A program made the translations under genes and the position numbers. Shown here piece by piece: positions 1,569 to 57,048 of a stretch of DNA of 64,000 nt; within the stretch, counting starts at the first letter, position 1; every line of letters begins with the position of its first letter. The notes under the pieces were generated by a model. The model searched no databases and had not been told where the DNA came from. It saw nothing but the letters and a program-made list of their open reading frames with translations. This DNA is from Lepidodermella squamata. Lineage: Eukaryota > Animalia > Gastrotricha. The DNA lies in assembly GCA_047495785.1 (NCBI GenBank), contig JBLDXI010000046.1:930001-994000 (forward strand). Reading direction: 5' to 3'.

Positions 1569-3044
1569 CTAGTCCAAGTAATCAATTTCACAAATATCCC
1601 GCTCAAAATTAGAATCGCGATCGTCCAGAACGCTGAAAGCATCCCGCATTTCGACTTCATCGAACCTTTGCCCCTTGTTGTTTTCAAGCAAAGCCAAATC
1701 AGGGCATTTCTCCAGCAAAAATCGTTCCATCCTAACAAGGCGGTGATGGCGAGCCTTGTGCAAAATTGTGTTGCCGTTTTTATCCTGATTTTTCAAATCA
1801 ACCCCGATTGCAGCGAGGAATTCAACCAGAGCCGATTTCCCAGCAAACAGAGCGGCTTGTTCTGAATAGTCCAAACTATCATCGGTGATATGACCAAACA
1901 AATAAGGCTCAAAATTTTTGATAGCATGGATAAATCGCGGAAATTCATCGTTGTCCAAGACTTTTTCACAATTGGAGTCAAGCGGCCAAAAATCTTCGAA
2001 ATTTAAATGAAGCAATTTTTGGGCATCATTTCGAAATTTTTCCAATCTTGAAATAAGCAACGGCAATAAATCCGAATCGCCGCTTTTCGACGCTAAATGC
2101 AGCAGAATTGCTTTACTGTTCAAATCTGCCGTCTCAATTTTCGCCCCATTATCGAGTAAAAATTTCAAAAAATACGTTCGACCGATTCGAATCGCAAAAT
2201 CGACAGTCGCTTTCGAAATTTCGGCATTCAAGTCCTTGACCAAATACTTCAGAGTCTCAAAATCGTTGGCTCGAATCGCCAGATCGAGTAAACAAGCTGG
2301 ATGAGATTCAATTTGGGCAACGGACTGCAATAAATCAGGAAAATTTTCAGACAAATATTTTACGACATCGCGACGTCCCGATCTCGTGAAACAATTATCA
2401 CTCATCATAGCCGCGTGAATAGCTAGAGATTTTTCACGGGTCGAACTCGTGAGAAACGGATTGGCTCCAAGTTCTTCAATCAGAAATTTGACCATTTCGA
2501 TATTTCCGGCCTCGGCTGCTGAGTGGAGAATGGGACTGCCGCAATGGGCGAATTTCACAATTCCTTGCTTGAAAATTTTGATTTTCAAAGGCCGAATATT
2601 TGCCAAAAATCCAGAAATATCCGTGTTCAATCGAGGATGGTTGACCATTCTTTTCAGTAAGGAAAACCCGCCGTCATCGTGAGGTTTTTTCGGAAAAAGC
2701 GCCGCAATAACCGCCGGTGTAATTCCTAAATAGTCATCCTAAAAAGTTTGAATGAGAATTATTTTTTTTTCATCAATTTAAAAATGGATTAATCCGCCTA
2801 CCTTGCCGAATTCGACCGATCCTTCAGCCGCCGCGACTTTTTGATCAAATGTGAGCAATTTGGCGAATAATTCGTTCCAATTTTCGCGCGTACTCGATTT
2901 AGTGCGAGCTTCCGACATGATCAACTTGAGTTCCGCGGCCATGAATGGGTCGTGAAGAAGTTGTAAACGCTCGTGGAAACTGCCGACCATCAAATTTATC
3001 ATTATTTTCACAGATTGAACATCCACTTCTTCGAAAACGTCCAT
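1569..3044 (-). CDS. Ankyrin-repeat protein, array paralog 2 (exons 3044-2802, 2738-1569)
   Basis: Phase-0 GT-AG intron 2739-2801 joins two ORFs in frame; ankyrin motifs GSPILHSAAEAGNIEMVKFLIEELGA, LLDLAIRANDFETLKYLV, DKNGNTILHKA; acidic tail. Confidence 0.88.
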
Positions 3045-3720
3045 AATGAAGTGAAAGGAAATCTAAAATAAAATTAAAATATTCTGAGTACATTGGAATT
3101 AGGATGAGGGGATAGAAAAAAAAAGAAAAATTGTATCAGATTAAAAGGCAAATTTATCCGAATTCTAGCGTCAAATTTTATAAGGAAATTCGCGGCTGGA
3201 TTGAAAAATCATGAGAAATCAGGTGGTCTGAACTTATTTTTAGCGTTCAGCTAAGCAAAATTAGACATTTTCGAAGCTATTTTTTACAAATTGGGCCAAA
3301 ACGCTAACTTCAAGTCTTATATATCTAAAATAGTTCATAAAATTATGATGAGGCCTTTCAAAAGTTGCAAGATGATTTATGTGAATTTTTCATTTATAAT
3401 AAATTAATAACACTATAAAAATGCATTTTTGGTGAATTTGTCCGCTAAAAACGCTCCGTTTTTTCATTTTCACAAAATTTTATCTTTCTTATCTTCGCTT
3501 CGAACCTCGAATTTTCACTGATCAGACTCGCAGAATTCGAACTGATAACATTTCGGAACAATCGCTCACATTTCAAATTTCACGATTTAATCGTACAATT
3601 CGTTTAGATTCAAAGCCGCCAAGTATTTGATCGAAGTGATAAGAATATGAATAAAATCAATCGAATATAATGAATAATCATGCTGTCAAGTCGAGTAGAA
3701 AACTCAACAATAATTAGGAT

Positions 3721-5208
3721 TCAAGCAACTTTAACATCTCCGTTTTCACCATCAAAGTCCGAGTCGTTTTAGTACCCATTTTCCTCATCATCCGAGTTAC
3801 CATACTCGCTTCGAGTTTTTATTTCTAGGTAATTTTTCCCATTTTTATTCTTCATACCAGCGAGATCAGGGCATTTTTCAAGAGGAACTTCTCAATATCA
3901 TCCAAACGATGGTGCCTAGCTTTGTGTAAAACCGTATCGCCAGCTTCATCTTGAAATTTCAAATCAATTCCTAACGCAACAATAAATTTGACGAGTTCCA
4001 TCGATCCTGCGTAATGAGCGGCATGGCTTGCGTAATCGAAGCTATCATCTGTAAAACCGCAGTAGCCACTTTCACGCTTGAACAACCTGTGCTCATACAC
4101 TTTGATGGCGTGAACTTGCCGCTGGAAACTAGTGCAGGAGAAAACACGCTCCGAGTCACCGTGAAGAGGCCAAAAATCGTTGAAAATTTCATGCAGCAAC
4201 TTGGGCACATCTTCGCGCGAATTTTCAAGATCCATCGTCGAAATAATTACAGGTAGAAGGTCCGAATCACCGGTGTTTGACGCCAAGTGATAACGAATAG
4301 CTGAGCTGAGCAGAAAATCAGGCGAAAATTTGACCCCGTTTTCGACAAATAGCTTCAAAATATAGGTTCGGCCGGCTCGAATTGCGTAGTCCGTATCACT
4401 TTCCGTGATCTCAGCTTTCTTTTCTCGAACTAGAAATTCAACTATTTCAAAGTCATTCGCTCTCACAGCTAGATCAAGCAAGGAAACCGTTGCATAGTAA
4501 CTAAAATTCATTGAACAGCTGGCGAGCTTTGGAAATTTGTCCATCAAATACATGAAAACGTCACGCCGCCCCGAATCTCGAAAATGAGTCATCGCTCAGA
4601 AAAATCGAGTGAATAGCAAGGTGTTCACTTTCTTCCGAACTCGTGAGAAATGGATCTGCGCCAAGTTCTTCGATCAAAAATGTAACCATCTCCAAATTTC
4701 CGGCCGCGGCTGCTGAGTGAAGAATCGGGCTTCCCTTTGGGGTGTATTTAATCGTCAATGGGTATTCGCGCCAGCTTTCGTGAATTTCGAGCTTATCAGG
4801 GCGAACATTCGCTAGAAATTTCCGCGTTTCTTCCTTCAATCCAGGCCTTGTTAGAATATTTTTCAATATTGAAAAGCCTCCGTCTGGGTATGGTTTTTTC
4901 GGAAAAAGCAACAAAATGTCTGATGGAACGAAGCCCTGGAAATTGAAATTTTTTAATTTGTTGATCAATTTTTCACACTTTCTGAATACCTCATCAATTT
5001 TTTTCAATCCTTCAGCCGTTGCGATTTTCTGGTCAAATTTCAAAAATTCAGCCGTTCTCTCGTACCACTCACTCTTGAAATTAATAAGGGAGTCTAATGC
5101 CGCAGTTAAACTTGAATCGCGGAGTTTTTTCAAACGTTCAGGGAAGCCAGTTTCCATCAGACTTATAAGACATCTCGAATTTTCATCGCTCAATTTTAAA
5201 CGATCCAT
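3721..5208 (-). pseudogene. Ankyrin-repeat array paralog 3, frameshifted
   Basis: Versus paralog 4: one extra base at 4574/4575 (ccgaatctcg vs ccgatctcg), a 1-base loss near 3876-3881 (expected LLEKCPDL), and a TAA at 3769-3771 inside the homologous acidic tail. Could partly be assembly error. Confidence 0.75.
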
Positions 5209-5495
5209 TTCCTCGAAAAAATTAATATCTAAAATGGGATCGTGTAAATAGCCTCATTATTGTTTTGCGGACAATTTGTCAATTTTTCACGCTTTTTCAA
5301 GTCTCGATGTACCAGATTCGGGTCATTGATCAAAATGTGGATTAATAATCTTCAATATAATAACAAAATTATTGATTCAATCAAGTTGAGATAAAATTCC
5401 GAAAGAAATGGAAAAAAAATCACAAATCGTTAACAAATTCAATTCAAGAACTGTTGCGCTCGAAAGATGAAAAAACTTAACAAGAGCAATTAAAT

Positions 5496-6983
5496 TCAGG
5501 AAACTTCTGCTTCTTCGTTCTCACTGTTCGAATCCTCGCCGTCGCCCGAGTCTTCGCCATAGCCGAACATCTCATCCTCCGAGTAGCCGAACTCGCTGCA
5601 CGTTTTCATTTGCAGATAAGTTTTGCCGCGATTGTTCTTCACAAACGCAAGATCAGGACATTTGCTCAACAGATACTCCTCAATTTCTTTCAGACGATGC
5701 TGCCTAGCCATGTGCAAAATTGTATCGCCATATTTATCCTGGTATTTCATATCAACGCCTAGATTTTCGATGAAAAACTCAACGAGTGCCTTACTGCCCG
5801 CGTAATTCGCAGCGGCGGCCGCGTCGCAATACCCATCGCCTGAGAATCCACGATCGCCAAATTTGTCGACATATAGATTCAACTCATTCAATTTAATAGC
5901 GTGAATTTGACGCGAAAAACGCGTTGAGTGGTACGCGCCGCCAGAATCGCCATTTAGCGGCCAAAATTCGTAGAAAACCGAAAACAGCAATTCAGGCGCC
6001 GCTTTACGCAAATTTTCTTCGTCAATTGTTGAAACAATGAAAGGCACGAGATCAGAATCTCCGGTTTTCGACGCTAAATGGTAGAGAATTGCAGAGCTGA
6101 GCAAATCTCTCGGGTTAAATTTAACGCCATTTTCGACGAGAAATTTCAAAATGTAGGTACGACCAGCCCGAATAGCGTAATCGACATTGTCTTTGCTGAC
6201 GGCAATTTTTCTGTCTTCAACCAGAAATCTGACTATTTCAAACTCGTTCGCTCTGATGGCAAGGTCGAGCAGCGAGCTTTGATGGGCAGCTGGACATTTG
6301 TCGATCAGGTACATGAAAACATCACGCCGCCCCGATCTCGAATAGCTGTCATCCCTCGTCAGCGTTGAATTAATCGCAAGACATCGGTCGGATAAGGAGC
6401 TCGGTAGACATGGATCTGCGCCAAGCTGTTCGATCAAAAATTTGACCATCTCCAAATTCCCGGCCGCGGCTGCTGAGTGGAGAATCGGGCTTCCCTTAGG
6501 GGTGTAATCAATTTTCAACGGGTATTCACGCCAGCTTTCGTGAATTTTAAGGCTATCAGGTCGAATGTTTGCTAGAAATTTTCGCGTTTCTTCTCGCAAG
6601 CCCGGCCGGGCTAACAGCTTTTTCAAAATTGAAAAACCACCATCAGGGTGAGGCTTCTTCGGAAAAAGTGCCACTACGTCAGAAGGGACAAATTCTCGGT
6701 AGGCAGGCTCAGGAGAAGAAAAATTATTTAATGTTTAAAATTATTTTAATCTGACTACCTCATCCGATTTGATCGAACCTTCAGCTGCCGCGATTTTCTG
6801 ATCGAATCTGAGATATTTAGCCGTCAACACATTCCACTCTTCATTGCTACAATTTGTCGTTAATGAATCAAACTCGGCTGTTAAACATGAATCTCGCAGC
6901 TTTTTCAAACGCTCAGGAAAACCGGATCCCGTAAAATTAATCCAAACTTTCGAATCTTCAGCGCGTAATTCTATACTCTTCAT
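5496..6983 (-). CDS. Ankyrin-repeat protein, array paralog 4 (exons 6983-6759, 6707-5496)
   Basis: In-frame join through a 51-nt intron 6708-6758; same ankyrin motifs; D/E-rich C-terminus. Confidence 0.85.
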
Positions 6984-7162
6984 TTAGCCGCAAAATTCAA
7001 TCTGAAAATTGATTTTGAAACACGGAGTAAACTTCTAGAACGTGAAATTTTTGAATTATTTCGAATTTATTTTACACAAAATGTAGATAAAATTTCTGCA
7101 AAAAATCTGAGTGAATCACAAATCTTCAACAAGTTTATCACGTCAATTGAATTGTTGTGTTT

Positions 7163-7704
7163 TTAGACGCCTCGATGGCTTTCTCGGAAGTGCTGCAAAA
7201 GCAGGTGCTCTGAGGCAACGGTCATCGGGCACATTTTACAGGCGAATCGACGAGTCACTAACGATGAGTTTGGAGGCGGAGGAAAGACGCGCTGAGTATT
7301 GCGACGAACCGGCAGAGCTGTTGCAAATTTACGCGAGTTTTGAGCCAATTTTTGAGTAGTGGGGCGTCTTAACCCAGTATTAGCTTCAGGTCTCGGCCGA
7401 TCGATGTCGATTGGAGTTGGTTGAATAGGAATAGGCGGAAGTTTTGCTGGTGATTGCGATTGAATTTTCCCGCAAAAATCGTAAATATTCAAATCTGGTT
7501 TTAAATTTGAAAAAATTCCACCTTAAATTTAGAAATAAAGTTATTACGCATGTTGAGGTGAGCTTTTTCGATATCGACCAATTTTTCGACCAAATCTTTC
7601 GCCTCGTTATCTTCAGGGTGCTCTTTTTGATAGCGAAAAATCCAATTGCGGCTGTATTCGAAAAGGCCGTAAAAATCTTTCGCCATGCCAAGAGAACTCG
7701 ACAT
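7163..7704 (-). CDS. Small protein with one C-terminal C2H2 zinc finger (exons 7704-7548, 7494-7163)
   Basis: Phase-1 intron 7495-7547 (53 nt) joins frames; C-terminus FACKMCPMTVASEHLLLQHFRESH fits C-x2-C-x12-H-x4-H; Pro-rich linker. Confidence 0.7.
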
Positions 7705-7772
7705 TTTTAAATAAAAACCCCCTAAAATCACACGATTAAATCTATAAAAAACCAAGGAGATTTAGAAAATAT

Positions 7773-9299
7773 TCAATCGCATTCTGCGACTCGTCTTGAG
7801 CTGGAGAAAAATAAGCACTTTAGCCTTTGGTCATCGCATCGTCTCGCATACTGTCTAGCAGTCCATCCGCGAGCATCAGTTACGTTAATATCAGCCCCAT
7901 ATTTCAGAAGGGTCTTCGCCATTTGAAAATTGGCACGTTTCACAGCTTCAATCAAAACTGTTGAATCGTTCGATAATTTCACGTTCAAATCAACGCCAGC
8001 TTTGCATAAATCTTTGATGGTTCGAATGTCCCATGTGTTAACAGCATCACTCAACGCCGCGGCTACATCTGCACCGAATTCAATTAAAAGCCGGACGATT
8101 TCGGGCCGAGAAGATGCCATCATTAGCGGGACGTTTCCGAACATTCCGCGATCATTCGGATTCGCTCCGTTTTCGAGTAATACTCGGATGACATCGATAT
8201 TCATCGAGTTGTAATCGCAAGCTAGGCAAATCGCGGTATCTTCACAGGTTGTTCGTCGGTGCAAGATATCTTGAGGAATCGAGTTGTTGAGAACTTCTCG
8301 TACCAAATCTGGACGTTTCATTATTACAGCTTTCCATAATTTAACTGCCTGGATTAGGGATGCGTGAAAATTCATTGCGAATTCTCAAATATTCTCCACT
8401 TACATCGAAGATTTTTTCAGCGTTTCGAGGAAAGACCAAATCGATAGTGGTCGCGTTGTCATCGCAAAACACCAAATATTGAACGTCAAAACGATAAGGC
8501 AAAAGCAGGGTGGGTCGACTGATGGGGGAGAAATCCCAATCTGGCTTCAAAGGGGAAGATAAATTCAAGGTACCAATTCATGAAATTAAGCCTCACCTCT
8601 TTCAATGCGATATCTTCTATCTTTGCCATGTTTCGAGTTAGAAATACAGGAGGAACGGCGAAAAAGCTGTTAACATGCACATCGATAACAACAGGAAGCC
8701 GCAGCAAATGATAAACCTTTAACAGATCTTTTTTAAAAGATTCCAAAAAAGCCAATGTCTTCAAACTACCTCAGGAAACGGGAATAGTTTCTCAATGTTA
8801 ACAAGCCACCAGTAGGTATTTTGCCGACGGGCCTTTCCAATCTTTAATGCGGATAATTCTTCTTGAGACATGCACCCCAGCAAGACATCAACAAACTCCA
8901 TTGCATTTTCGAAGTTGCGCCCATTGTTAATTTTCAGATAAACTTCATCACTCAGATCTATCTCACCAATAAGCCGAAAGCGCGATTTGAAACTGCCGTC
9001 AGTCAGATGTTTGCGAAATCGTGTTAATGCTCCATCGACTTGGATGAAATTTCTTGCGCTTTCTCTCCCGAATTCACGCACAAGAAACGCAGCCCAAAAG
9101 CCATCTCCATTTAGATACTGATGCCACCTGTTGTTAAGGATAGGCATTGCAGATTCAAGTAAACAGCGAAAAATAACTTTTTGTTGACGACATTACATGC
9201 CTTGAATAAGTCAGAATTCGACAGGTTTAACAATATTTTGGATACAACTTCCGGTGGCAATGTCTCCACGGGATCAAACAGCCTCCTCCTACTGCCCAT
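7773..9299 (-). CDS. F-box + ankyrin-repeat protein (exons 9299-9178, 9127-8770, 8716-8597, 8544-8404, 8348-7773)
   Basis: Four GT-AG introns of 50, 53, 52 and 55 nt give one continuous frame; spliced F-box DPVETLPPEVVSKILLNLSNSDLFKACNVVNKKWHQYLNGDGFW; C-terminal ankyrins (VIRVLLENGANPN, GNVPLMMA, LLKYGADINVTDARGWTA). Confidence 0.82.
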
Positions 9300-9839: not shown

Positions 9840-10277
9840 CGGTGTGGCTATTGGCACATAATTATGTGCCCCTTAATGGCTATTGGCACATAACATTTTT
9901 CATTTAACTGCTTATTTCGGGAGTTTAATTCTCAGATACCAGCATTTCAACCTTGCAATAGCAATCTAGGGGCGGCGAATTCACTGGAATCGTCGGATTT
10001 CACGTAACTGCGATAGACTTCAGATACTCTACTTGGGCTACCCATTAGATGACGGATACCCCGATTTGCGGGCCCATGACTGCAATTTCGATATCGCCAA
10101 ACGATTCCCTGTTGACGAAAACCCTAATATCAATACTCGTGGAACATTTCGATGCGTGACTTTCTAAAACATCGAAAGTTGAAATTAGCGTTATGTGCTA
10201 ATAGCCATTAAGGGGCACATAATGTATGTGCCAATAGCCAATAAGAGGCACATAATTATGTGCCAATAGCAACACCC
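9840..10277. mobile_element. Non-autonomous Mutator-like MITE
   Basis: TIRs ggtgtggctattggcacataattatgtgcc / ggcacataattatgtgccaatagcaacacc with internally repeated subunits; exact 9-bp TSD ttgcatttt at 9831-9839 and 10278-10286. Confidence 0.85.
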
Positions 10278-10407
10278 TTGCATTTTTTGCATAGCCACGG
10301 TGAAGAATTTTATTGTTTTTCATCGAGATTGACGATATGTTATCAAAAGCAATGAACAACAAGGTTTTCTTGTTCATATTTAGTATGCATCGCTGGTCGT
10401 TTCAAAT

Positions 10408-11578
10408 TTAATTGACGTATTTCTCTGCAAGCGGATCGAATGCTTCATCAAGAGCATCACAAGCTTTGTCAGATGCATAATTCGTCGCGCAAGCCATGGC
10501 AAAGTTTTTCCTTGGAGCCACCCAAGCGGTTGCGTACCAGGCCTCATTAGAGCCGGAATGAGTTAAAACATCATCAGCCCATGTTGGGCTCTCTACTGAC
10601 CATCCGCCAGCATAGTCGCCAACTGGGCGTTGAAGACGCTGGATGGTTGCTGCGGTTAATATCTGGGTATTCGTGCCTCTTCCGCCAGCAACGTGAACCT
10701 GCAAAAACTTGCCATAGTCTGGCAACGAACAATATACGCTACCAGCTGGACCACAAGCCGGTGGGTTGTCAGCTTCCGGGCTATCAGGGGAGATCGGACT
10801 CGGGCCTTTTTGAGTCTTGCCGTGTCCCCAGGGTTGATCGATAACCCTAGCACTGCCAGGGGCACCGAATCCACAACTAGTCATACCTAGTGGGTTGAAA
10901 ATTCTCTTTCTCATGATGTTCTCCCATGTGTCATTAGCAGCCTTTTCCAACACGTAGCCAACGACCACATAACCGGCGTTTGAGTAAACGAACTTGGAAG
11001 CTGGTCTATAAATATCTCTTATCTCTATAAAATACTTCAAACATTAAAATGTTGAATAACCTGTATTCAGGTTTTGCTCGCAGAAGAGATCGAACGGCCG
11101 TGGTACGAGCCATGGGAGAATCGCCATCCTGCCACATTTTTTCGAATACACTGTCAGGTTCATGTTCAGAAAACCCACCACGATTTTGTATTAGTTGCTC
11201 GATAGTTGCACCCCGTAATTCAGCATGAATTGTCTCCCCTGGCAAGAGCGTAGATAGGGTGTCCTCAAATCGGAACAGGCCTTGTTCCACGAAGATTCCG
11301 ACCAGTGTCGCAGTCATTGCTTTGGTATTCGACCCGAGGTGCCATTTGTCATTGAGGCCAACTCGAGTTGGGTTACCGAACTTGCGCACACCCGTTGCTC
11401 CTTGACCAACAAGCTGGCCGTTTTTCCATACAGCGCAAGCTAGAGCAGGAGCCCCGCCTTTCAGGCGATAAGGCTCAATCACTGAAGTCAAATTTTCCTG
11501 AGCTGATGAAGATTTTAGCCAAGCTAAACTTAATGCAGCAAAAATTACGATGAATCCTGAATCTGAAAAGATAATCAT
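10408..11578 (-). CDS. Secreted beta-lactamase-family (AmpC/class C-like) serine hydrolase, copy 1 (exons 11578-11061, 11005-10408)
   Basis: Motifs GSNTK (SxxK), YSN (YxN), HSGS; hydrophobic N-terminal signal; phase-2 intron 11006-11060 (55 nt). Start codon inferred. Confidence 0.9.
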
Positions 11579-11667
11579 GGCAAATAAAACTCTCACTAGT
11601 GTCGAAAGTTTTTTTTACTGAACGGGGATATAGCCACGCATTTTGGCAAGAAAAACGACTGCCTTTA

Positions 11668-11686
11668 TTTACTCAGCTGAGGTAAA
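11668..11686. promoter_or_regulatory. Conserved upstream motif of serine hydrolase copy 1 (bZIP-site-like)
   Basis: tttactcagctgaggtaaa matches ttgactcaggtgaggtaaa upstream of copy 2 (17/19) at a similar distance from the ATG. Confidence 0.5.
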
Positions 11687-11947
11687 TAATGCACAAGTCG
11701 TGCTTGTAAACCTAAATGAACCTGCAAAAAACGGATAACAGCCCGCGTTTATTGCATAATAAAGGAAGGTGCGTGATTTTTAATCAACGGTTATGCCAAT
11801 AAGCTGCGGTGCATTTTAGTGTTAGGAAGGCGAGGAAGACTTATCGCCTTGGGAAAACAGTGATAATAAAAATGCCACACCTGAGAAATTGAATACAGTA
11901 AATAGTTTTCCCATGTCACACTATTAAGTATTTGTAGCCAATTACAC

Positions 11948-13096
11948 TCAATCGGCATATTTATCGAGAGGATCGAAAGCTGAATCCAAAGCATCAGATG
12001 CGTTCTTGGAGGCGTAATTGCTTGCACAAGCCATGACGAGGTTTTTTACCGGGGCGACCCACGCAGATGCATACCAGGCCGTATTGGAACCAGAGTGAGT
12101 CAAAACTTTACCACCAGCCCAGTCCTGATTATCCACAATCCAACCACCAGCGTACTCTCCAGTCGGTTTCTGCAAGCGTTGAATCGTTGCTGACTTAAGG
12201 AGCTGGGTATCCTCACCTCGCCCGCCAGCAACATGAATCTGTAAGAATTTTCCGTAGTCCTGCAGCGAGCAGTGAACTGTCCCGGCCGGTCCAACTGAAG
12301 CAGGATTATCAGCTTCTGGATGATTCGGAGCCATAGGACGAATACCACTCGTGCTGTTAACATGGCCCCAAGGCTGATCGACGTTGGTTGAAGTACCAGG
12401 AGCCCCGAACCCACAGCTCGCCATACCTAACGGATCAAACAAGCTCTTCTTCATTATGCTCTCCCACGTGTCCTTGGCCGCCTTTTCTAGCACGACACCA
12501 GCAATCATGTATCCTGAGTTCGAGTAGACAAATGCCGACCCGGGGCTGAGATAAATTTCGAACAAATATTAGAATTTCATCAAAGGAATGAGAAATTACG
12601 TTGAGGAAGGTTTCAGTTTTAGAATGGCTCGAACTGCCGTGATTCGAGCATCCGTAGAATTGCCATCGTCCCACATTTTTGACCAAATATCATCTGGCGC
12701 GTTTTCCGACAACCCACCGCGATTGTGAAGAAGTTGTTCGATTGTAACATTCTGCAAATCAGGGTGGATCTCTTCGCCTGACAAAAGTTTTGAGAGCGGG
12801 TCGTCAAACTTTAGTAAGCCTTGCTCAACGAATATGCCCACGAGTGTGGCTGTCATAGCTTTCGTGTTCGAACCAAGATGCCATTTGTCATTAGGCTGCA
12901 CTGGGGTTGGGTCGCCTGATTTACGAACACCCGTTGCTCCGAAACCGACAAGCTGGCCACCTTTCCAAACTGCACATGCCAGGGCAGGGGCGCCGCCCTT
13001 CAGCCGAATTGGCTCCAACGTCGCAGTTAGGTCATCTTGGGCTGCAACGAGGATAAAACCAATCGCGAGAAGTCCTACTTTACCAACGAAACGCAT
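11948..13096 (-). CDS. Secreted beta-lactamase-family serine hydrolase, copy 2 (exons 13096-12600, 12545-11948)
   Basis: Signal peptide MRFVGKVGLLAIGFILVAA; WHLGSNTK, FVYSN, LTHSGSN; phase-2 intron 12546-12599 at the same codon as in copy 1. Confidence 0.92.
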
Positions 13097-13182
13097 TGCA
13101 AATAAATAAAAAGGGGAAAGTGTCAAAGTGTTGGCACTTTTGCCTTCTTATATAAATACATCATGAAAAAAGTGAAGCTTTG

Positions 13183-13201
13183 TTGACTCAGGTGAGGTAA
13201 A
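13183..13201. promoter_or_regulatory. Conserved upstream motif of serine hydrolase copy 2 (contains TGACTCA)
   Basis: ttgactcaggtgaggtaaa, about 30 nt upstream of a TATA-like box (13149-13158); shared with copy 1. Confidence 0.5.
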
Positions 13202-15035
13202 CACTATTGAAAATGACGGGATTTTCTGTTAAATGCCGAAATGGAAACTCTCTCAAATATACCTGGCTATGTACCCGAAATCGTAATTTGTGTTCTGAGA
13301 GTAAGTTCAGCCTGTTCCATAACTGCGCCTAATTTTTTGCATCAGGGCTAAAATAAAACCGCCATCTGAAGTTCAAGGTGACATTTGAATGGTTCAATCG
13401 ATAAAATCTTGTCGCTGTTTTCTCGTTTCACTTGTGTTCTTAAGCTTTCGTTCCCAACAGCAATACATATTTCGTTCAGTGCCGGACGTGTTATTGGGAC
13501 TTGGAAGCATAATAGCAAGATCAGCTAGATATACTCAAAACCTGAATTTTCAGTATAATTTCAATATGTTTTGGCCCCAAGTTTTGGCCCCGCTATGCAG
13601 GTAATCTCATGTACGTGGATCAACACTTTTACCGATTTTATTCGATTTTAACAATTTCCGCTTATCAATGATGATGTGTCTTATAATCCTTGGATTTTTA
13701 TTTGAGAATCCTGGCTCCCACTTTATCAAATTTGGCTTTTTGGACAGCTGGTTTCTAAAAAATCACGGATTTATTGTAAAATCGATACTATGGAAATCGA
13801 AATCGTAACACGTGCCGAAGTTTAGCTCGCAAATCGCGAATTAACCCTCGCTAGCGCAAAATACGTCCAATACGGACATTTATCGGTTGCGCACGATGAT
13901 AAAAAGTTGGCAACTATAGGAGACCCAGCTAAAAAGTCGAAATCCTATATCTGTGGAAATAAATCGCAGGGATCCAGACCGGCATACGATAAGCTGAAAA
14001 GTGCTAAAATGTTAAGTTGAAATAATCTGTCAAGTGTTTCCGTGGATTTCAGCTTAAAATTTCAGCATAATTTCCAGGCGAGGAAAACTCTTTCTCTTAA
14101 GCGGATGGCGTCATGCCATTTCAGCCATTTTCAGTTTGCAATCTTTATTTTAGCGTTTTAAAAGGTGGCCTATCAATTTCGGGGAAGAAACGAACTGAAA
14201 CAGGACGCGTCAATCGGCTGTACATCAAATTGCATTGATGTGAATACGACGTAAAGAGTAGGGCGAGGTTAGATACTACGGTTGAATCGGCATTTTTAAT
14301 TCATTTTACTACATATATTTTCATTGTCTTAAGTCCACCACTATGAGATATATTTTCAATTAATGAAAAAAACCAACATCTATATTGCGTATAATTAGTG
14401 AGGGATCTTTACACCGCTCAAGTCTGAAGCGCTAAAAAATGAATATTGTACACACAGCTGAGGCGATAATCTTTCTGCTAATCCTGATGATATAGCGTAA
14501 TTCAATAGAAGGCTGCTAATTATTTTTCAATTATAAAAATAATATACCAGAGTTTTCTTCACCACTGCGAAATTTCTTCAAATATCAACCGGTATAATGC
14601 ACGATTATTTTCGAATGACTCAGGCCAACACCTTGCTCGCAAATATTCGGAATCACTGAAGCGTGTATAGCCGACCAGACAATTGCATTATTCCTTTATA
14701 GTATATTTTACCATTTTTTATCGCGGATAAAAGAATTAGCTTTCCCTATTAATGCCCGCGGCCGTATATATTTTTGGTTATCTCGCCCTATATATTAGCC
14801 GTCACTCAAAATAAATTATCAAGCATATGTTCATTCCTTATGCTTTTTTCAGTCACCCTGTCACGATTTATTGATATTATAATATCGGTGAAAAAATTAG
14901 ATTTTTTTATTGGAATTTTTTATCATCGCGTTTCCTTATATTATTATATAGATTTTTGTGTATTGGTACGGATAAAAAATATCGCGCATATATATATAAA
15001 TCCAAGATCGTTGGTTCTGTTTCTCTGCATGGATA

Positions 15036-40890: not shown

Positions 40891-42219
40891 ATCTTCAATT
40901 TTACCCAGCAAAAGGCTGGTTGGTGCTGGACGTGAGCTGGACGAAGCTGGGTTGTGCTGGGTTGTGCCTGAAAAAAGTGTGCTGGACACGCGATTTGCTA
41001 TCCAGCACCTACTCGAAAATCATCCAGCACGAAGTCGTGTTACACACCTCATTCATCCAGCACGGTCCTGAAAATGGACTCGAACAGCTAACAAAAATTG
41101 ACAAAGTCGTGTGCGCGTGCTGGACTATAGTTCCAAGCAGGCAGAGTCAACATTTCTGAGAATCAGGTGTGACACAAAAAAATACGAATGGAGTTTCGAT
41201 TTTGTACGCCAATTTGACTCACTTTGCACGCAAGTTCAGCGCGAACCAAGTATCGCCGGTCAATAAATCTTATATCGGCGGATAGCCCTCTAAATTCTGT
41301 ACAAACTATCAGCGGCCGCTGGCCAAGTTCGCCGCCGATCGTGTCGATGTCGGCTTCGGAAATCGCGATTTTGGCCTTGGCCGCACGCCAATTTGACTCA
41401 CTTTGCACGCAAGTTCAGCGCGAACCAAGTATCGCCGGTCAATAAATCTTATATCGGCGGATAGCCCTCTAAATTCTGTACAAACTATCAGCGGCCGCTG
41501 GCCAAGTTCGCCGCCGATCGCGTCGATGTCGGCTTCGGAAATCGCGATTTTGGCCTTGGCCGCACGCCAATTTGACTCACTTTGCACGCAAGTTCAGCGC
41601 GAACCAAGTATCGCCGGTCAATAAATCTTATATCGGCGGATAGCCCTCTAAATTCTGTACAAACTATCAGCGGCCGCTGGCCAAGTTCGCCGCCGATCGC
41701 GTCGATGTCGGCTTCGGAAATCGCGATTTTGGCCTTGGCCGCACGCCAATTTGACTCACTTTGCACGCAAGTTCAGCGCGAACCAAGTATCGCCGGTCAA
41801 TAAATCTTATATCGGCGGATAGCCCTCTAAATTCTGTACAAACTATCAGCGGCCGCTGGCCAAGTTCGCCGCCGATCGTGTCGATGTCGGCTTCGGAAAT
41901 CGCGATTTTGGCCTATATTCAAAAGCCGTCACATTTGATACAGTGAATCCGGTGGCGTAGAGGGTTTGCCGCCACATGTGCTGGATGGGTGCCGAGATCG
42001 GGTCACAGAACCGCCACCTCGTTTTTCGCTTTCAATTAGGCCTTTTCCTGCACTGTCCAGCACTGGTGCTTTTAGTGCTGGATTCAGTGCTGGATGCGTG
42101 CCGGTCATGGCTAGGGACTGGTGCTGGATAATGGTGCTGGATAAATCGCACGCGTGCTGGATAGTGCGAAAAATTAGTGCTGGTTAGGTGCTGAAATTCG
42201 TGCTGGATACAATTGGAAT
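40891..42219. mobile_element. 1.3-kb insertion with ccagca/tgctgg subterminal motifs, carrying a tandem array
   Basis: Absent from copy 1 (gattgcaagtaggttgg); imperfect TIR ttcaattttacccagca / tgctggatacaattgga; TSD unclear. Confidence 0.78.
41206..41914. repeat. 179-bp tandem repeat, about 4 near-identical copies
   Basis: Unit begins acgccaatttgactcactttgcacg; identical spurious ORFs recur at 41224, 41403, 41582, 41761. Confidence 0.97.
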
Positions 42220-50923: not shown

Positions 50924-53507
50924 TCAAACGTAATCTTCGAAATCGGTCTGCGTAGCCGCTGAAGTCTTGTTTCGCATAGCGTCACGTCGGCGAATGGACG
51001 CCAATGTTGGTCCACCATATCGTCGGTCTGTCATTATTGCTTTATCGACCTGATTTTCCTCGCTTCGATGAATGTTGACCTGGGTAGGTCCGCCTAGATA
51101 ATCGACGTGAACCGCTAAATCGCTGCGATCTAAGCCTGAGCTGGTTAAACTCTTCACATCGGCTACTTCACCAGTTCCGACTAAGGGAACAAAAAACTAC
51201 TATTAGAAACTGGGAATAGAAGTGTCTTAAACAGCCTTACTTGTGAAATGAATGTCTCCGTAGAAACCAGGGGTCGATTCGCTCATAAGCCGGATGAGAG
51301 CAGCTTCCTGAGCTTCGACGGATATGTCCTCATACACAGCTTCCGATGACGCAACTTCGACCTGGAACATGCTAGAAAAGCCAGGTCGGGATTTCGCTAG
51401 GTCTTGCGAGCTGTCTAGTCCTTGCGGCATCTTGATTACCGAGATGCTCTGATGTAATCGCCGCAATTCACCGTGAGGGCCGATTGGAACCTCGGAGCAG
51501 TGCTGTTGAAACTCTGCAACAGCTTTTTCAACACTATCGACGAGCTTGAAATTGTCCAGCCCGATAACCTCCATCTCGTGGCGGACGTGTTCGGCTAAAT
51601 TGACGAAAATTATGTGCTTCTTGAGCTTGAACACGAGCTGCATCAACATTCGCCACGCCTGTATCCCAGTGAAGTCGACCCCGGTGACGAAACGACAGTC
51701 CAGAACGAAATGAAGGTCCGGGCTAGACAAAATACCAGTCATTCGATCGATGAATTTATCGACGGATGGGTACTTCATTCCGTGAGATAGCTGGATAATT
51801 GTCGCCCGGCCAACTTTCTCATCTCCAATCGGTAGTCCGGTTGAAAGGATGTCAATAGGCTCGTGGCTCACAGATAAGTGCATGGATACAATTGGTCTCA
51901 AAAATAGGACCATGTTGATAAGTATAGCAATAACTATTCCATAAGCAAGGTCGTAGAACAGGCAAAGCATGAACGTAAACAGGTATAGAAAGAAGTCTGG
52001 TTTGTACTCTCTCCAAATCTTCATAGCCTGCGGAATTCAAGTCAAATTTAGTAGATTATTCGATTCAAATCAAACTTACAGCATGGTAATCGAAAAGGTG
52101 ATGAGCTGCAGCGATTAAGATTGAGGCAAGGGCTGCTTTTGGTACAAAGTAGATAACTGGGGTGAAACAGCTAAGGGTGACAAGGACGATTACTATACTT
52201 ATCGCTGAACTCAGCAGCGATTTCACCCCGCATCGATCGTTCAATACAGTTTTCGCAGTCGCTGCAGCGCAAGGATAGCCCATTATGAAGCTTTGCAGGA
52301 AGTTTGATAAGCCGATAGATACTAATTCTTGGGTCGCGTCGATTCGGTAACCATTTTTACGGCCCATAGCTTTCAGAATAGCAAAAGTCTCCATTATTCC
52401 CATCAACGGGAGGATAATGATTCCTACCGATATTTTCTGCATGATTTCTTGTGTAGTCTCTAGAACAACTAATTCTTCGACCCATTCTCCAGCATGCGTG
52501 ACATTTTCATGCCATTCTCCAGCATGCGTGACGTTTTCGTGCCATTCTCCAGCGTGAGTTGTATTGACAGCCATTTCGAATGGCCTCCAAACCACGGTCC
52601 TGTTGTAGAGAACAAAATCGGGAGCTCTTGGGGTTGGAAAGCCGGGTTTTATGTACCCGACCATGCCAAGATGAGTTTCCGTCCAATGCGGGTCCTCGAT
52701 ATACATCGAATAAGCAATCGCAGTCGCTCCGATGAAAACGAAGCAATTTCTGGTCGAGATTACCAATCTCAAGACAGTCAAGCCAACTTGCTTAATTTTT
52801 TTGCCAATCGCACTTCGCGGTTCCGGGAGACGAGGCACAGCATAGGTTACAAAGAAATCATGTGCGTATTCAATCGTAAGAAGGATAACCAATGAAATGA
52901 CACCAAACTTGACGTCCATGACTTTGATTTGATCGCGATGGTCGTAGTAGTACTTCAGCTGTTTAACGAAAACACCAGGGCTGTCATTTGGGCCCTTCTT
53001 AAAGCCAAGGAAGCTTTTCAATTGAGAGGCGATAATGCTGAAGCACGCAGCTGATGTGAAGCCCGAGACAACAGGAATGCTGAAGAGATTGACGAGGAAG
53101 CCGAGTTTGAATACTCCGATTGCGATCATCAGCAGTCCGCTGATCAGCGATAGAATTGAGGCGTAAGTATTGTCTCCTTCACTACTCAACGGGTTCAAAA
53201 TGTTGAACTGCGCCAGTAGCATAGAACCGATGGCTGACGGGCCAATTACAGCATCTTTGCTCGAGCCGAGGAATATGTAGATAAAAGCTCCGAGAAAGCT
53301 ACTGTAAAGACCGAATTCGGGTCTCAAATAAGCCAGTTGGGCATATGCGAGCGAAATAGGAAGTAAAGTAAAGCCGACAGTGAAACCCGCTATTATGTCG
53401 TAGGGAATGTTCGAAAGTTGGTAGTTGGGCAGCCATTTGACAATAGGAAATGCATCTCTTAGCCAGGCTCGTGGGTCTGTCTTGATTTGTATTATAAATT
53501 TCCGCAT
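50924..53507 (-). CDS. SLC26: SLC26/SulP anion transporter with STAS domain, copy A (SLC26A11-like; exons 53507-52080, 52027-51241, 51180-50924)
   Basis: FPIVKWLPNY, DIIAGFTVG, PEFGLYSSF, GSSKD, PVVSGFTSAA, IDATQEL, VLDCRFVTGVDFTG; phases consistent. Confidence 0.93.
52481..52560 (-). repeat. Coding 30-bp tandem repeat (THAGEWHENV)
   Basis: ccattctccagc(a/g)tg recurs at 30-nt spacing three times. Confidence 0.9.
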
Positions 53508-53859: not shown

Positions 53860-56484
53860 TCAATCAGTTTGCGTGGCAATGGATTTCGCGTTGCTATCGG
53901 GATCGGCAAAAGTAGTGCTGTAGCCTGTATTTCTTCTTCGCCTAAGCGAAGCGTTTGACATTCGGTCGATCACAATGCCATCGACTCGAGAATCGACTCG
54001 ACTGAAGCCGCGATGGAGGTTGAATTCAGCCGCACCTCCCGGGAAGCCGGTGTGCACAGCAATCTCGTCATCCTCCATCTCAATATTCGCATCCCCGGGT
54101 TCCTCGCCAGTTCCGACTAAGAAATGTATTCACGTATTATAAAGGATTGCTAAAAAAATAGCTTACGTGTAAGAGGCACGTCTCCCCAGAAGTAGCCAGG
54201 AGTCGAGTCTTCAATAAGCTTGGCAAGAGCAGCTTCTTGCGCGGCCTTCGACGCCTCGTCGCCCTCCTTTTCATCAATCGTAAGCACTTTGTGGTTGTGG
54301 TGATCGACATTGATGTGATGTTTGGATTCAACGTGGCTCTGCATTCTCGAAATTGTTGGAGAGGATCTCACGACCGAAATACTATGGCGAAGCCGTTTCA
54401 ATCGATCACTGCTACTGTCCGTTAAGTAACTATTGCCGAACTCGACTACAGCACTCTCGATGCTGTTAAGAGGCTTGAAGTTGTCCAGACCAATCGTCTC
54501 CATCTGGTGTCGCACAGAGTCGGCCAAGTTCACGAATATGATGTGCTTCTTATGCCTGATGACCAGGGCCATCAGCAATCGCCAGGCTTGAATTCCGGTG
54601 AAATCAATCCCTGTTACGAACCTGCAATCCAGGACGTAATGGATATCCGGTGTTGATAGCAGTGCAGTCATGCGGTCGATGAATTTGTCAACAGATGGAT
54701 ATTTCATACCATGAGATAACTGGATGATAGTGACGCGACCATGCTTCTCATCGCCTACCACATGCCCATGGCTAACGATGTGAAGCGGTTCGTGGGAGAC
54801 CGAAAGGTGCATGCTCACAATTGGCCGCAGGAATGTAACCATGTTGATGAGAATGGCGATGACGATGCCGTAGGCTAGGTCATAAAACAGGCACAGCAGG
54901 AACGTAAGCATGTACAAAAAGAAATCGGGCTTGTATTCCTTCCAAATTTTGATTGCCTGTGAAAAAAACAGGATTTTTAAAAGTCGAGCCAAAATTCTAG
55001 AAATGAGAAAAATCCATCCTAAAAATGAAAAATTCTGAAATATTAATTACTACTTGAAAATTACAGTTTTTAATCTCGGATATTTCAATTTTAATTTATT
55101 TGCGTAAATTTGAAAAATTTCTTACCGCTCGATAGTCGAAGAGATGGTGAGCTGCAGCGATTAGAATAGCAGCTAGCGCAGATTTTGGCACGAAATAGAA
55201 AATCTGAGTGAGAGAACCGATGGAAACCAGAATGATCACAATGCTTAAAATGCTGCTCAACAAAGATTTAACACCACATCGCTCGTTGAGAACCGTTTTA
55301 GCGGTGGCCGCACCGCAGGGATAGCCCATGTAGAAGCTCTGTAGGAAATTTGTCAATCCAATAGAGATCAGCTCCTGAGTAGCGTCGATTCTATAGCCAT
55401 TTTTGCGACCCATCGCTTTGAGAATGGCGAAAGTCTCCATGATACACATTAGTGGGACAATGATGATACCGACCGCAATTTTGGTCATTATGACCTGAGT
55501 AGTTTCAAGCAGGATCTCTTGCTCGACCCATGATCCGTTGGTTCGATTGGTCGGGTCGGGCACGAATACTTGCGTTTTGTTCCATAATTCGAATCTTGGA
55601 GCCGTTGGAACTGGAAATCCGGGCCTTATGTAGCCAACCATGCTGATGTGCTTCTCAGCCCAGACTTTATCCTCCTTAAACATGGCATAAGCGTAACCTG
55701 TCGTTCCCAGGAAGACGAATACGTTCCTGCCAGAAATGAAGAGCTTCAAGACAACCAGAGCAACTTCGCGAGCTTTCTGTGCCTTTTCCGATACCGGCTT
55801 TTTAATTCTCGGTAAAATGTAATCGCAGAAAATTTGATATCCATACTCCATGACTAGAAGAACCGCAAGAGATATAATTCCGATGTAAACATCGTGGAGT
55901 CGAATTTCTTCTGGATGGTCGGCGTAATTTTTCAATTGCTTCACGAACACCCCAGGGCTATCATTTGGATTCTTCTTGATGCCGAGGATGCTTTTCAGCT
56001 GAGAGGCAATAATCGTGAAACACGCTGCAGATGTGAAGCCCGAAACAACGGGAATGCTGAATAGGTTGACGATAAAGCCAAGTTTGAAAAAGCCGATGAA
56101 GAGCATGAGGAGACCACTTATCAACGCGAGGATTGATGCATAAGTGTTATCGCCCTGGGGACTCAACGGGCTTAGGACGTTGAACCCGGCCAATATCGTT
56201 GATCCAATCGCCGACGGTCCGATGACAGCATCCTTACTCGATCCCATGAACAAGTACAGAAAAGTGCCGATGAAACTGCTGTAAAGGCCAAATTCTGGCC
56301 TCAAGTAAGCAAGCTGGGCATAGGCCAGGGATATAGGAAGCAGGGTCAGGCCGACCGTTAACCCAGAGATGATATCATAGGGTATGTTCGCCAGCTCATA
56401 TTTAGGCAGCCATATCGCGATAGGAAACACTGATTTTAACCATGCCACTGGGTCTCTTCTTATTTGCGCAATAAATTTGAACAT
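53860..56484 (-). CDS. SLC26: SLC26/SulP anion transporter, copy B (exons 56484-55126, 54956-54167, 54116-53860)
   Basis: Same motifs and intron positions as copy A. Confidence 0.93.
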
Positions 56485-57048
56485 TTTATTTAACAAGCTA
56501 AATACGAAACTGGGGAGAGCACGCTGTGTTGACGTTATGGCTTTATATTTTTTTGCCGAGGTGTTCAGCTATAAACGCGCAGACAATGGCACGTTGGAGA
56601 GTGCGAGCGGCGTAATTATCACCAAAAGAACACGCTTTTTTGTTTTCTTTTTGACTGCTGCTTGCACTTTGATTCCAACCTGCGTCACAGGTAAAACTGG
56701 CGCAAAGCCCAGCAATCGGCAGTGGAATTTCATCATGAGGACGGCCGCGTCACGAAATTATGAGTGTAGGTTACATGTACACATGAGCCGCATTTACAAA
56801 GTTATTTATACATCAAACTTGAGTGCCAGACTTAAATAGGTCGAATGACCTGTTAACCTAGAATCTCAAGACAAAAAGCTTGAATCCTCTTCAACTCTTC
56901 GATTTCAAGGGTTTTAGGTTATTAGGTTTCAAGTCGAATACCTCTATTAGCTCGAAAGGTTTTATTTCAGATAAAACAGCAATGGAATGTAGGAGATGCA
57001 ATTAAGCAACATGCGAAAGGAATTGTCATAGAATTTTCTGGAATTTTC

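Follow-up and report, generated by a model that had tools for sequence, protein, structure and literature searches.

How does a gastrotrich come to carry, side by side, two intron-bearing genes for serine hydrolases of a bacterial type, and what might their products do in an animal? The pair lies in Lepidodermella squamata (Gastrotricha; assembly GCA_047495785.1, contig JBLDXI010000046.1, positions 930,001-994,000 of the forward strand), within a stretch of 64,000 nt that we call the window and from whose first letter all coordinates are counted. A first-pass annotation, made from the letters of this stretch, had read the genes as intact and secreted members of the beta-lactamase family, probably taken up from bacteria and domesticated, and had proposed that they serve in antibiotic detoxification, in the hydrolysis of D-peptides or in the processing of cell walls. 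We consider it probable that the pair goes back to a horizontal transfer from Myxococcota-like bacteria, that it was domesticated, and that it now encodes secreted hydrolases of D-peptides or peptidoglycan peptides; the horizontal transfer itself is the well-supported part of this reading.

The two genes are arranged head to tail in tandem on the minus strand, B then A, between position 13096 (the ATG of gene B) and position 10408 (the stop of gene A). Three public runs from three studies (X1, X2 and X3) were compared with the window over 10300-13300 (3001 letters), and the features of the locus, in the order of transcription, are as follows.

13124..13158, minus strand: 5' end of gene B (about 13124) and its TATA box (13147-13158), from the SMART template-switch oligo and the upstream sequence.
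12600..13096, minus strand: gene B exon 1, with the start codon, the predicted signal peptide (residues 1-19), the N-terminal half of PF00144 and SNTK (Ser76, Lys79); open reading frame (ORF), Pfam E 9e-23, contigs of complementary DNA (cDNA) type.
12546..12599, minus strand: gene B intron, 54 nt, GT..AG, phase 2; skipped exactly in an X3 contig.
11948..12545, minus strand: gene B exon 2 including the stop, encoding the C-terminal half with YSN, DQPWGH, ADNP, GPAGTVH and HSG; Pfam E 6.1e-24, alignment of bacterial homologues.
11748..11784, minus strand: candidate polyadenylation, or poly(A), signals of gene B, 164 and 195 nt past the stop; motif scan.
11594..11633, minus strand: 5' end of gene A (about 11594-11597) and its TATA-like box (11627-11633), from the SMART PCR primer and the upstream sequence.
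11061..11578, minus strand: gene A exon 1, with the start codon, the predicted signal peptide and the N-terminal half with SNTK; ORF, Pfam E 9.6e-17.
11006..11060, minus strand: gene A intron, 55 nt, GT..AG, phase 2; skipped in X2 and X3, kept in X1.
10408..11005, minus strand: gene A exon 2 including the stop, encoding the C-terminal half with YSN and HSG, the His of GPAGxVH being replaced by Tyr; Pfam E 2.5e-24.
10309..10314, minus strand: candidate poly(A) signal of gene A, 94 nt past the stop; motif scan.

Gene B (ATG at 13096) encodes a protein of 364 aa and gene A (ATG at 11578) one of 371 aa. The translations of the four exons match the Pfam family PF00144 with 61.6-86.5 bits against a cut-off of 27 and jointly cover profile positions 3-321 of 329, and both proteins contain the motifs SNTK, YSN and HSG, which align with the corresponding motifs of the peptidases Pab87 and R61. 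In either gene the intron splits a codon after its second base, in an alignment column common to the two and eight residues ahead of YSN, and exon 2 comprises 198 whole codons in both. At each N-terminus a hydrophobic core of 11 residues (Kyte-Doolittle 2.8-3.0) is followed by a small-x-small site, with cleavage predicted between VAA and QDD in gene B and between SSA and QEN in gene A; the conserved domain begins directly afterwards, about 20-27 residues past the Met in both proteins. The sequences carry N-x-S/T sequons, four in gene B and two in gene A. Outside the coding sequence the alignment between the two loci is lost, and no third or degenerate copy of the pair was found in the 64-kb window. 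As a separate observation, the bases just upstream of the start codons of B and A (13097-13110 and 11579-11590) have a common motif, TTTATTTGC(A/C)ATG, which suggests that a stretch of 5' untranslated region (UTR) or a start context may be conserved.

Both genes are transcribed and spliced. Both introns are present in run X1, which has the character of genomic DNA, whereas contigs of X2 and X3 show the precise removal of the gene A intron (11006-11060) and a contig of X3 that of the gene B intron (12546-12599); in X2, loose ends at 12545 and 12600 run on into the opposite exon, with bases from the end of exon 1 and from the beginning of exon 2, respectively. In X2, the SMART template-switch oligo followed by GGGG adjoins position 13124, 28 nt 5' of the gene B ATG, and SMART PCR-primer sequence adjoins position 11597, 19 nt 5' of the gene A ATG. 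Because these oligo sequences are present, X2 is cDNA, and the adaptors at 13124 and 11597 therefore mark separate 5' ends for the mRNAs of gene B and gene A. The TATA box of gene B (13147-13158) lies 23-34 nt upstream of its transcript 5' end and the TATA-like CTATATC of gene A (11627-11633) about 30-36 nt upstream of its own, and neither 5' UTR contains an upstream ATG. At the 3' side, a motif scan finds AATAAA-type signals past both stops. Contigs of cDNA type extend into the gene B 3' UTR as far as 11841-11874, and past gene A an X3 cDNA contig extends to 10318; the poly(A) signals of both genes are candidates. Two parts of gene B, 12308-12559 and 12770-13040, are each present in two versions in both the DNA run X1 and the cDNA run X2; one version is that of the window, the second differs at 22 sites in 252-271 nt (about 8%), and both are expressed. 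These versions represent either very divergent haplotypes or a second locus.

The closest relatives found for both genes are bacterial. Library searches were run with exon pieces, or with a profile alignment that combined exon pieces with a bacterial homologue, and full-length identities were computed on spliced A and B proteins built by script. With exon 2 as query, HMMER was run exhaustively against 1.84 billion representative proteins and gave 8259 matches, headed by P0001, a single-ORF protein of 398 aa from a Kofleriaceae metagenome-assembled genome (MAG) with 58% identity over exon 2. The cluster names of the top matches are bacterial (MAGs of Gammaproteobacteria and Planctomycetota), and their Joint Genome Institute labels read 'CubicO group peptidase' or 'D-alanyl-D-alanine carboxypeptidase'. 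In a collection of 5.8 billion clusters, profile and exon-only searches listed matches that are bacterial or unnamed metagenomic, the names being Kofleriaceae, Polyangiaceae, Deltaproteobacteria, Verrucomicrobiota, Nocardia and Hyphomonadaceae; gene A exon 2 reached at most 53% identity among the matches listed there. The best full-length match of both proteins is P0173 (locus L007), from the MAG of an 'uncultured delta proteobacterium', which aligns end to end over about 350 residues with 57% identity to gene B and 53% to gene A. When each prokaryotic species was represented by a single genome, at least 559 relatives came to light; those in Myxococcota are 50-57% identical to gene B, those in Planctomycetota and Verrucomicrobiota about 40-46%. 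Protein atlas matches comprised generic bacterial PF00144 clusters only. No eukaryote-named relative was among the matches listed in the three large searches, whose collections lack the proteins of Lepidodermella squamata itself, as the missing self-match indicates.

The likeness to the bacterial subfamily extends over the whole protein. In 80 bacterial homologues of the Myxococcota-type PF00144 subfamily, 69 columns are at least 90% conserved; gene B retains 66 of these and gene A 61, including the three catalytic motifs and the blocks PWGH, ADNP and GPAG. The PF00144 proteins of Myxococcota and of the Planctomycetota-Verrucomicrobiota-Chlamydiota (PVC) group typified by P0173 and P0001, variously annotated as 'D-alanyl-D-alanine carboxypeptidase', 'CubicO group peptidase' or 'serine hydrolase domain-containing protein', are collinear end to end with the animal proteins at 53-57% identity and have in common with them SxTK, YSN, PWGH, ADNP, GPAG and H-x-GSN, as well as a mature N-terminus at a DDLxxTLEP block. 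The bacterial genes, though, are single exons of 64-75% GC, mostly with a lipoprotein-type leader (consensus ...ACG), whereas those of the animal contain an intron, are about 50% GC and have a predicted eukaryotic signal peptide, TATA promoters and N-glycosylation sequons.

The trees favour a place for the pair among Myxococcota. In our main maximum-likelihood tree (87 rows, 377 columns, LG+C20+F+G4, rooted on alphaproteobacterial relatives), A and B are joined with support of 100/100 and fall inside Myxococcota clades of 12 rows (100/85) and 15 rows (99/90), the alphaproteobacterial relatives (Hyphomonadaceae, Glycocaulis) forming a distant outgroup. A quick tree of 102 rows, for which 70 more metagenomic sequences were drawn in, again places the pair in a Myxococcota-dominated clade, with support of 97 and 96. 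In that tree, Nocardia (Actinomycetota) homologues nest within the Myxococcota clade, and in a Myxococcota-type genome (L083, 5040-9961) DDE transposase genes flank the PF00144 homologue; because of these two observations, we regard the bacterial gene as mobile among bacteria.

Composition and divergence are those of long-established host genes. The GC content at third codon positions (GC3) is 0.48 in gene B and 0.43 in gene A, as compared with 0.43-0.56 in neighbouring host exons and 0.71-0.97 in the bacterial relatives. The two proteins are 67% identical, with a proportion of synonymous differences (pS) of 0.76, which is saturated, and of nonsynonymous differences (pN) of 0.20. Since GC3 is host-like and the paralogues are only 67% identical with saturated synonymous sites, both the transfer and the duplication must be old. 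Both copies are under purifying selection; among the 33 coding variants listed from the public runs, 24 are synonymous and nine nonsynonymous. Gene A has evolved about three times faster than gene B (terminal branches of 0.45 and 0.16), and its substitution H264Y replaces the family-conserved His of GPAGxVH. Taken with the splicing evidence, these data bear out several claims of the first-pass annotation, namely that there are two intact paralogues with full motif sets and predicted signal peptides, that a single intron at the same codon and phase predates their duplication, that the pair is integrated in an animal genome and its enzymes are of bacterial rather than LACTB-like type, and, as predicted from the N-terminal signal peptides, that the products are probably secreted.

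We propose the following history. Both copies would descend from a single bacterial gene whose product, a serine hydrolase located in the periplasm or made as a lipoprotein, has the penicillin-binding protein (PBP)/beta-lactamase fold (PF00144, MEROPS S12-like) and belongs to a family common in Myxococcota, Planctomycetota and Verrucomicrobiota; an ancestor of this invertebrate would have acquired that gene horizontally. The gene would then have gained a eukaryotic promoter with a TATA box, exchanged its bacterial leader for an endoplasmic reticulum signal peptide and acquired one spliceosomal intron, while its base composition drifted toward that of the host. A tandem duplication would have followed, and the copies, each separately transcribed and spliced, would have diverged for a long time under constraint, the order of events thus being transfer, intron gain with the new leader, duplication, and divergence.

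The enzymes themselves are best read as a distinct branch of S12-type enzymes whose closest characterised relatives would be the D-stereospecific peptidases. When a profile of the bacterial subfamily was compared with solved structures, the alkaline D-peptidase 4y7p ranked first (E 7e-29), followed by Pab87 (2qmi), IS11 (7spn), ClbP, SurE and the R61 DD-peptidase, AmpC enzymes entering the list near E 1e-14. As a structural stand-in for the animal proteins we used the AlphaFold model of P0173, their closest bacterial homologue (predicted local distance difference test score, pLDDT, 88.7). In a fold search with this model, Pab87, R61 and an FmtA-like protein lead, and the first 14 matches also include SurE and the alkaline D-peptidase, among which the first class C beta-lactamases are interspersed; identity is 16-24% throughout. 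In pairwise alignments, YSN is matched by YSN or YLN, and HSG by the HSG of Pab87 and the HTG of R61. With the D-stereospecific S12 peptidases (Bacillus cereus alkaline D-peptidase, 4y7p; Pyrococcus abyssi Pab87, 2qmi; Streptomyces R61, 1cef/3pte; ClbP), the animal proteins thus have in common the fold, SxxK, YxN and a His-type third motif, at an identity of only 17-24%. Pab87 and ClbP have extra domains that are absent from the animal genes.

In support of a microbial substrate, we know of no peptidoglycan and no D-amino-acid peptides made by animals; because animals have no such substrates of their own, microbial targets are the likeliest, and direct biochemical dealing with bacteria is indicated. 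The substrate would probably be microbial peptides that contain D-amino acids, or the stem peptides of peptidoglycan, and the enzyme probably a secreted hydrolase. In an acyl-enzyme route, with the numbering of gene B, Ser76 of SNTK would attack the substrate carbonyl, aided by Lys79 and by Tyr173 of YSN, and His316-Ser-Gly318 would line the active-site strand. The bonds cleaved would be those beside D-amino acids, either in peptidoglycan stem peptides (of the D-Ala-D-Ala type) or in bacterial peptides with D-residues, which the animal would encounter while feeding on, or living with, bacteria.

Esterase-type and beta-lactamase activities are possible, and each defines an alternative that retains the horizontal origin. 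The first, that the substrate is not a peptide and that the enzymes are esterases, lipases or acyl- or cyclo-transferases of the family VIII esterase or PBP-type thioesterase kind, is the one that we take most seriously, although we think it unlikely. Among the weak matches are SurE and Ulm16 (PBP-type cyclases), Est-Y29, the EstA esterase and the methyl acetate hydrolase AcmB, yet these are weaker than the matches to D-peptidases, and no biosynthetic cluster was seen around the bacterial homologues inspected.

A further, slightly more doubtful possibility is that the secreted enzyme acts on the chemistry of partner microbes, either by destroying D-amino-acid or beta-lactam antibiotics or by trimming peptidoglycan fragments, with copy A turned to a second substrate. 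If so, antibiotic destruction would amount to a host-encoded antibiotic resistance that shapes the microbiome of the animal's tissues, whereas the trimming of peptidoglycan fragments would tune immune recognition.

That the pair are true beta-lactamases, inactivating surrounding beta-lactams and, for example, guarding useful bacteria, is improbable. Class C (AmpC) enzymes belong to the same Pfam family as the animal proteins and have the same overall fold, SxxK and YxN; NCBIfam class C models are the top weak matches of exon 1, and many AmpC structures match the P0173 model with template-modelling (TM) scores of about 0.7. However, D-peptidases lead AmpC enzymes by more than 10 orders of magnitude in E-value in the profile search, and identity to class C enzymes is 16-19%. 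The marks of class C itself are lacking: in the NCBIfam equivalog model bla_class_C, the two halves of gene B, scored apart, obtain 31.6 and 15.2 bits, so that even their sum is far below the cut-off of 415, and motif 3 is HSG in both genes where class C enzymes have KTG, the His and Gly being invariant and the middle residue variable in the aligned bacterial relatives. Among the three functions that the first-pass annotation had offered, antibiotic detoxification is accordingly the least supported, and hydrolysis of D-peptides or cell-wall peptides the best fit, albeit by reference to relatives of at most 24% identity.

Could the pair instead have been inherited vertically from an old animal lineage, and merely look bacterial? 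PMC2266909 describes four old PBP/beta-lactamase lineages in animals (LACTB, LACTB-like 1, LACTB-like 2 and esterase-like) and traces them to Alphaproteobacteria, and vertical descent would be compatible with the fact that all four carry the same three motifs (PMC2266909) and that our tree contains no such sequence. The LACTB family is of the same superfamily and, like genes A and B, ultimately of bacterial ancestry (PMC2266909). LACTB, though, has a mitochondrial leader and an N-terminal extension of 50-100 residues and is broadly distributed in animals, whereas genes A and B have neither N-terminal feature, are predicted to be secreted and are, in the searches made, nearest to Myxococcota. 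Full-length identity to Myxococcota is 53-57%, as against the 17-40% that LACTB-family members have to human LACTB (PMC2266909). A and B are placed inside a bacterial clade, and the Alphaproteobacteria, the class from which PMC2266909 derives the animal lineages, supply their distant outgroup. As indirect evidence against kinship with LACTB, this protein was not among the best 60 sequence matches or the best 50 fold matches to solved structures, and no eukaryote-named match was among those listed. Taken together, these results leave vertical inheritance very improbable. Bacterial contamination or a chimeric assembly, for which we found no point in favour, has next to no chance of being the explanation, given two spliceosomal introns removed in cDNA, host-like GC3, TATA boxes upstream of SMART-marked 5' ends, poly(A) signals past the stops, animal genes on either side on one contig, and the presence of the locus in three independent studies.

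Several points nonetheless weigh against the reading that we prefer, that of a Myxococcota-derived, domesticated and secreted D-peptide hydrolase. As regards function, no characterised enzyme exceeds 24% identity, in fold the class C beta-lactamases and esterases are nearly as good a match, and the bacterial gene neighbourhoods, inspected for a functional clue, yielded none that is conserved. Secretion of the A and B products was read from the N-termini by hand, and the activity of gene A may have been changed or weakened, given its lost His and faster evolution. As regards origin, our trees contain no LACTB-family or other animal PF00144 sequences besides A and B, and the immediate sister of the pair differs between the trees of 87 and 102 rows, being weakly supported in the latter. 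In an approximately unbiased (AU) test, a tree that keeps the 22 bacterial sequences of the Myxococcota clade together and the animal pair outside them costs 35 log-likelihood units (delta lnL) with a p of 0.14, and is therefore not rejected. Because of this p value and the shifting immediate sister, a Myxococcota-like donor is favoured but not proven. Finally, the collections searched are without this genome's own proteins; with no self-match in them, the failure to detect orthologues in related animals is weak evidence that these are absent.

Horizontally acquired bacterial enzyme genes are familiar from other invertebrates, among them the dae amidases of ticks and mites and the aphid genes ldcA and amiD. 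In a sponge, domesticated bacterial enzyme genes occur with introns and in tandem copies (PMC4784904), and fungal PF00144 lactamases are reported as a further case (PMC5610705). The sponge transfers resemble genes A and B in being bacterial-type secreted hydrolases that gained introns, took on a host-like composition, stand in tandem copies and are expressed (PMC4784904); the supplement that lists them includes no PF00144-type gene. We found no report of this PF00144 subfamily in an animal in the literature searched. The pair adds no new category, since bacterial enzyme genes domesticated by sponges and other invertebrates are already documented. It is an unusually clean case of transfer, in which gene structure, splicing, cDNA 5' ends, composition, selection and a well-sampled bacterial tree come together. 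A conserved secreted enzyme of the PBP/beta-lactamase fold would point to digestion, defence or the management of symbionts, and the pair offers a first point of entry for experiments on a very large bacterial subfamily without a tested member.

The genes around the pair are eukaryotic and comprise ankyrin-repeat genes, an ANF-receptor gene and two SLC26A11-type transporters. On one side, at 1569-8375, at least five long ORFs for ankyrin-repeat proteins follow one another on the minus strand. On the other, two SLC26A11-type sulfate/anion transporter genes lie in tandem (51227-53507 and 54150-56496), in each of which one long exon encodes 466-480 aa; the first also has a confirmed STAS-domain exon. 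The best named relatives of the SLC26 gene are the SLC26A11 proteins of molluscs, chordates and other animals, at only 30-35% identity. Its only close relative (53%) is encoded on L085, a metagenome scaffold of the European Nucleotide Archive (CAOS20-1...) that is 41 kb long, has 40% GC and looks eukaryotic, and on which, like in the window, a STAS ORF adjoins the SLC26 gene. This scaffold is probably host DNA from a relative of Lepidodermella squamata; the 17 kb of it that were read contain no PF00144 gene.

Two repeat features complete the description of the window. Directly downstream of gene A, at 9841-10276, lies an element that resembles a miniature inverted-repeat transposable element (MITE), with 52-nt terminal inverted repeats that are 94% complementary and about 330 nt between them; it also contains nested shorter inverted repeats and two copies of an 18-nt palindrome, GGCACATAATTATGTGCC. 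Farther away, at 41206-41914, four copies of a 179-nt unit, 99% identical, form a tandem array within a GC-richer stretch at 38-44 kb.

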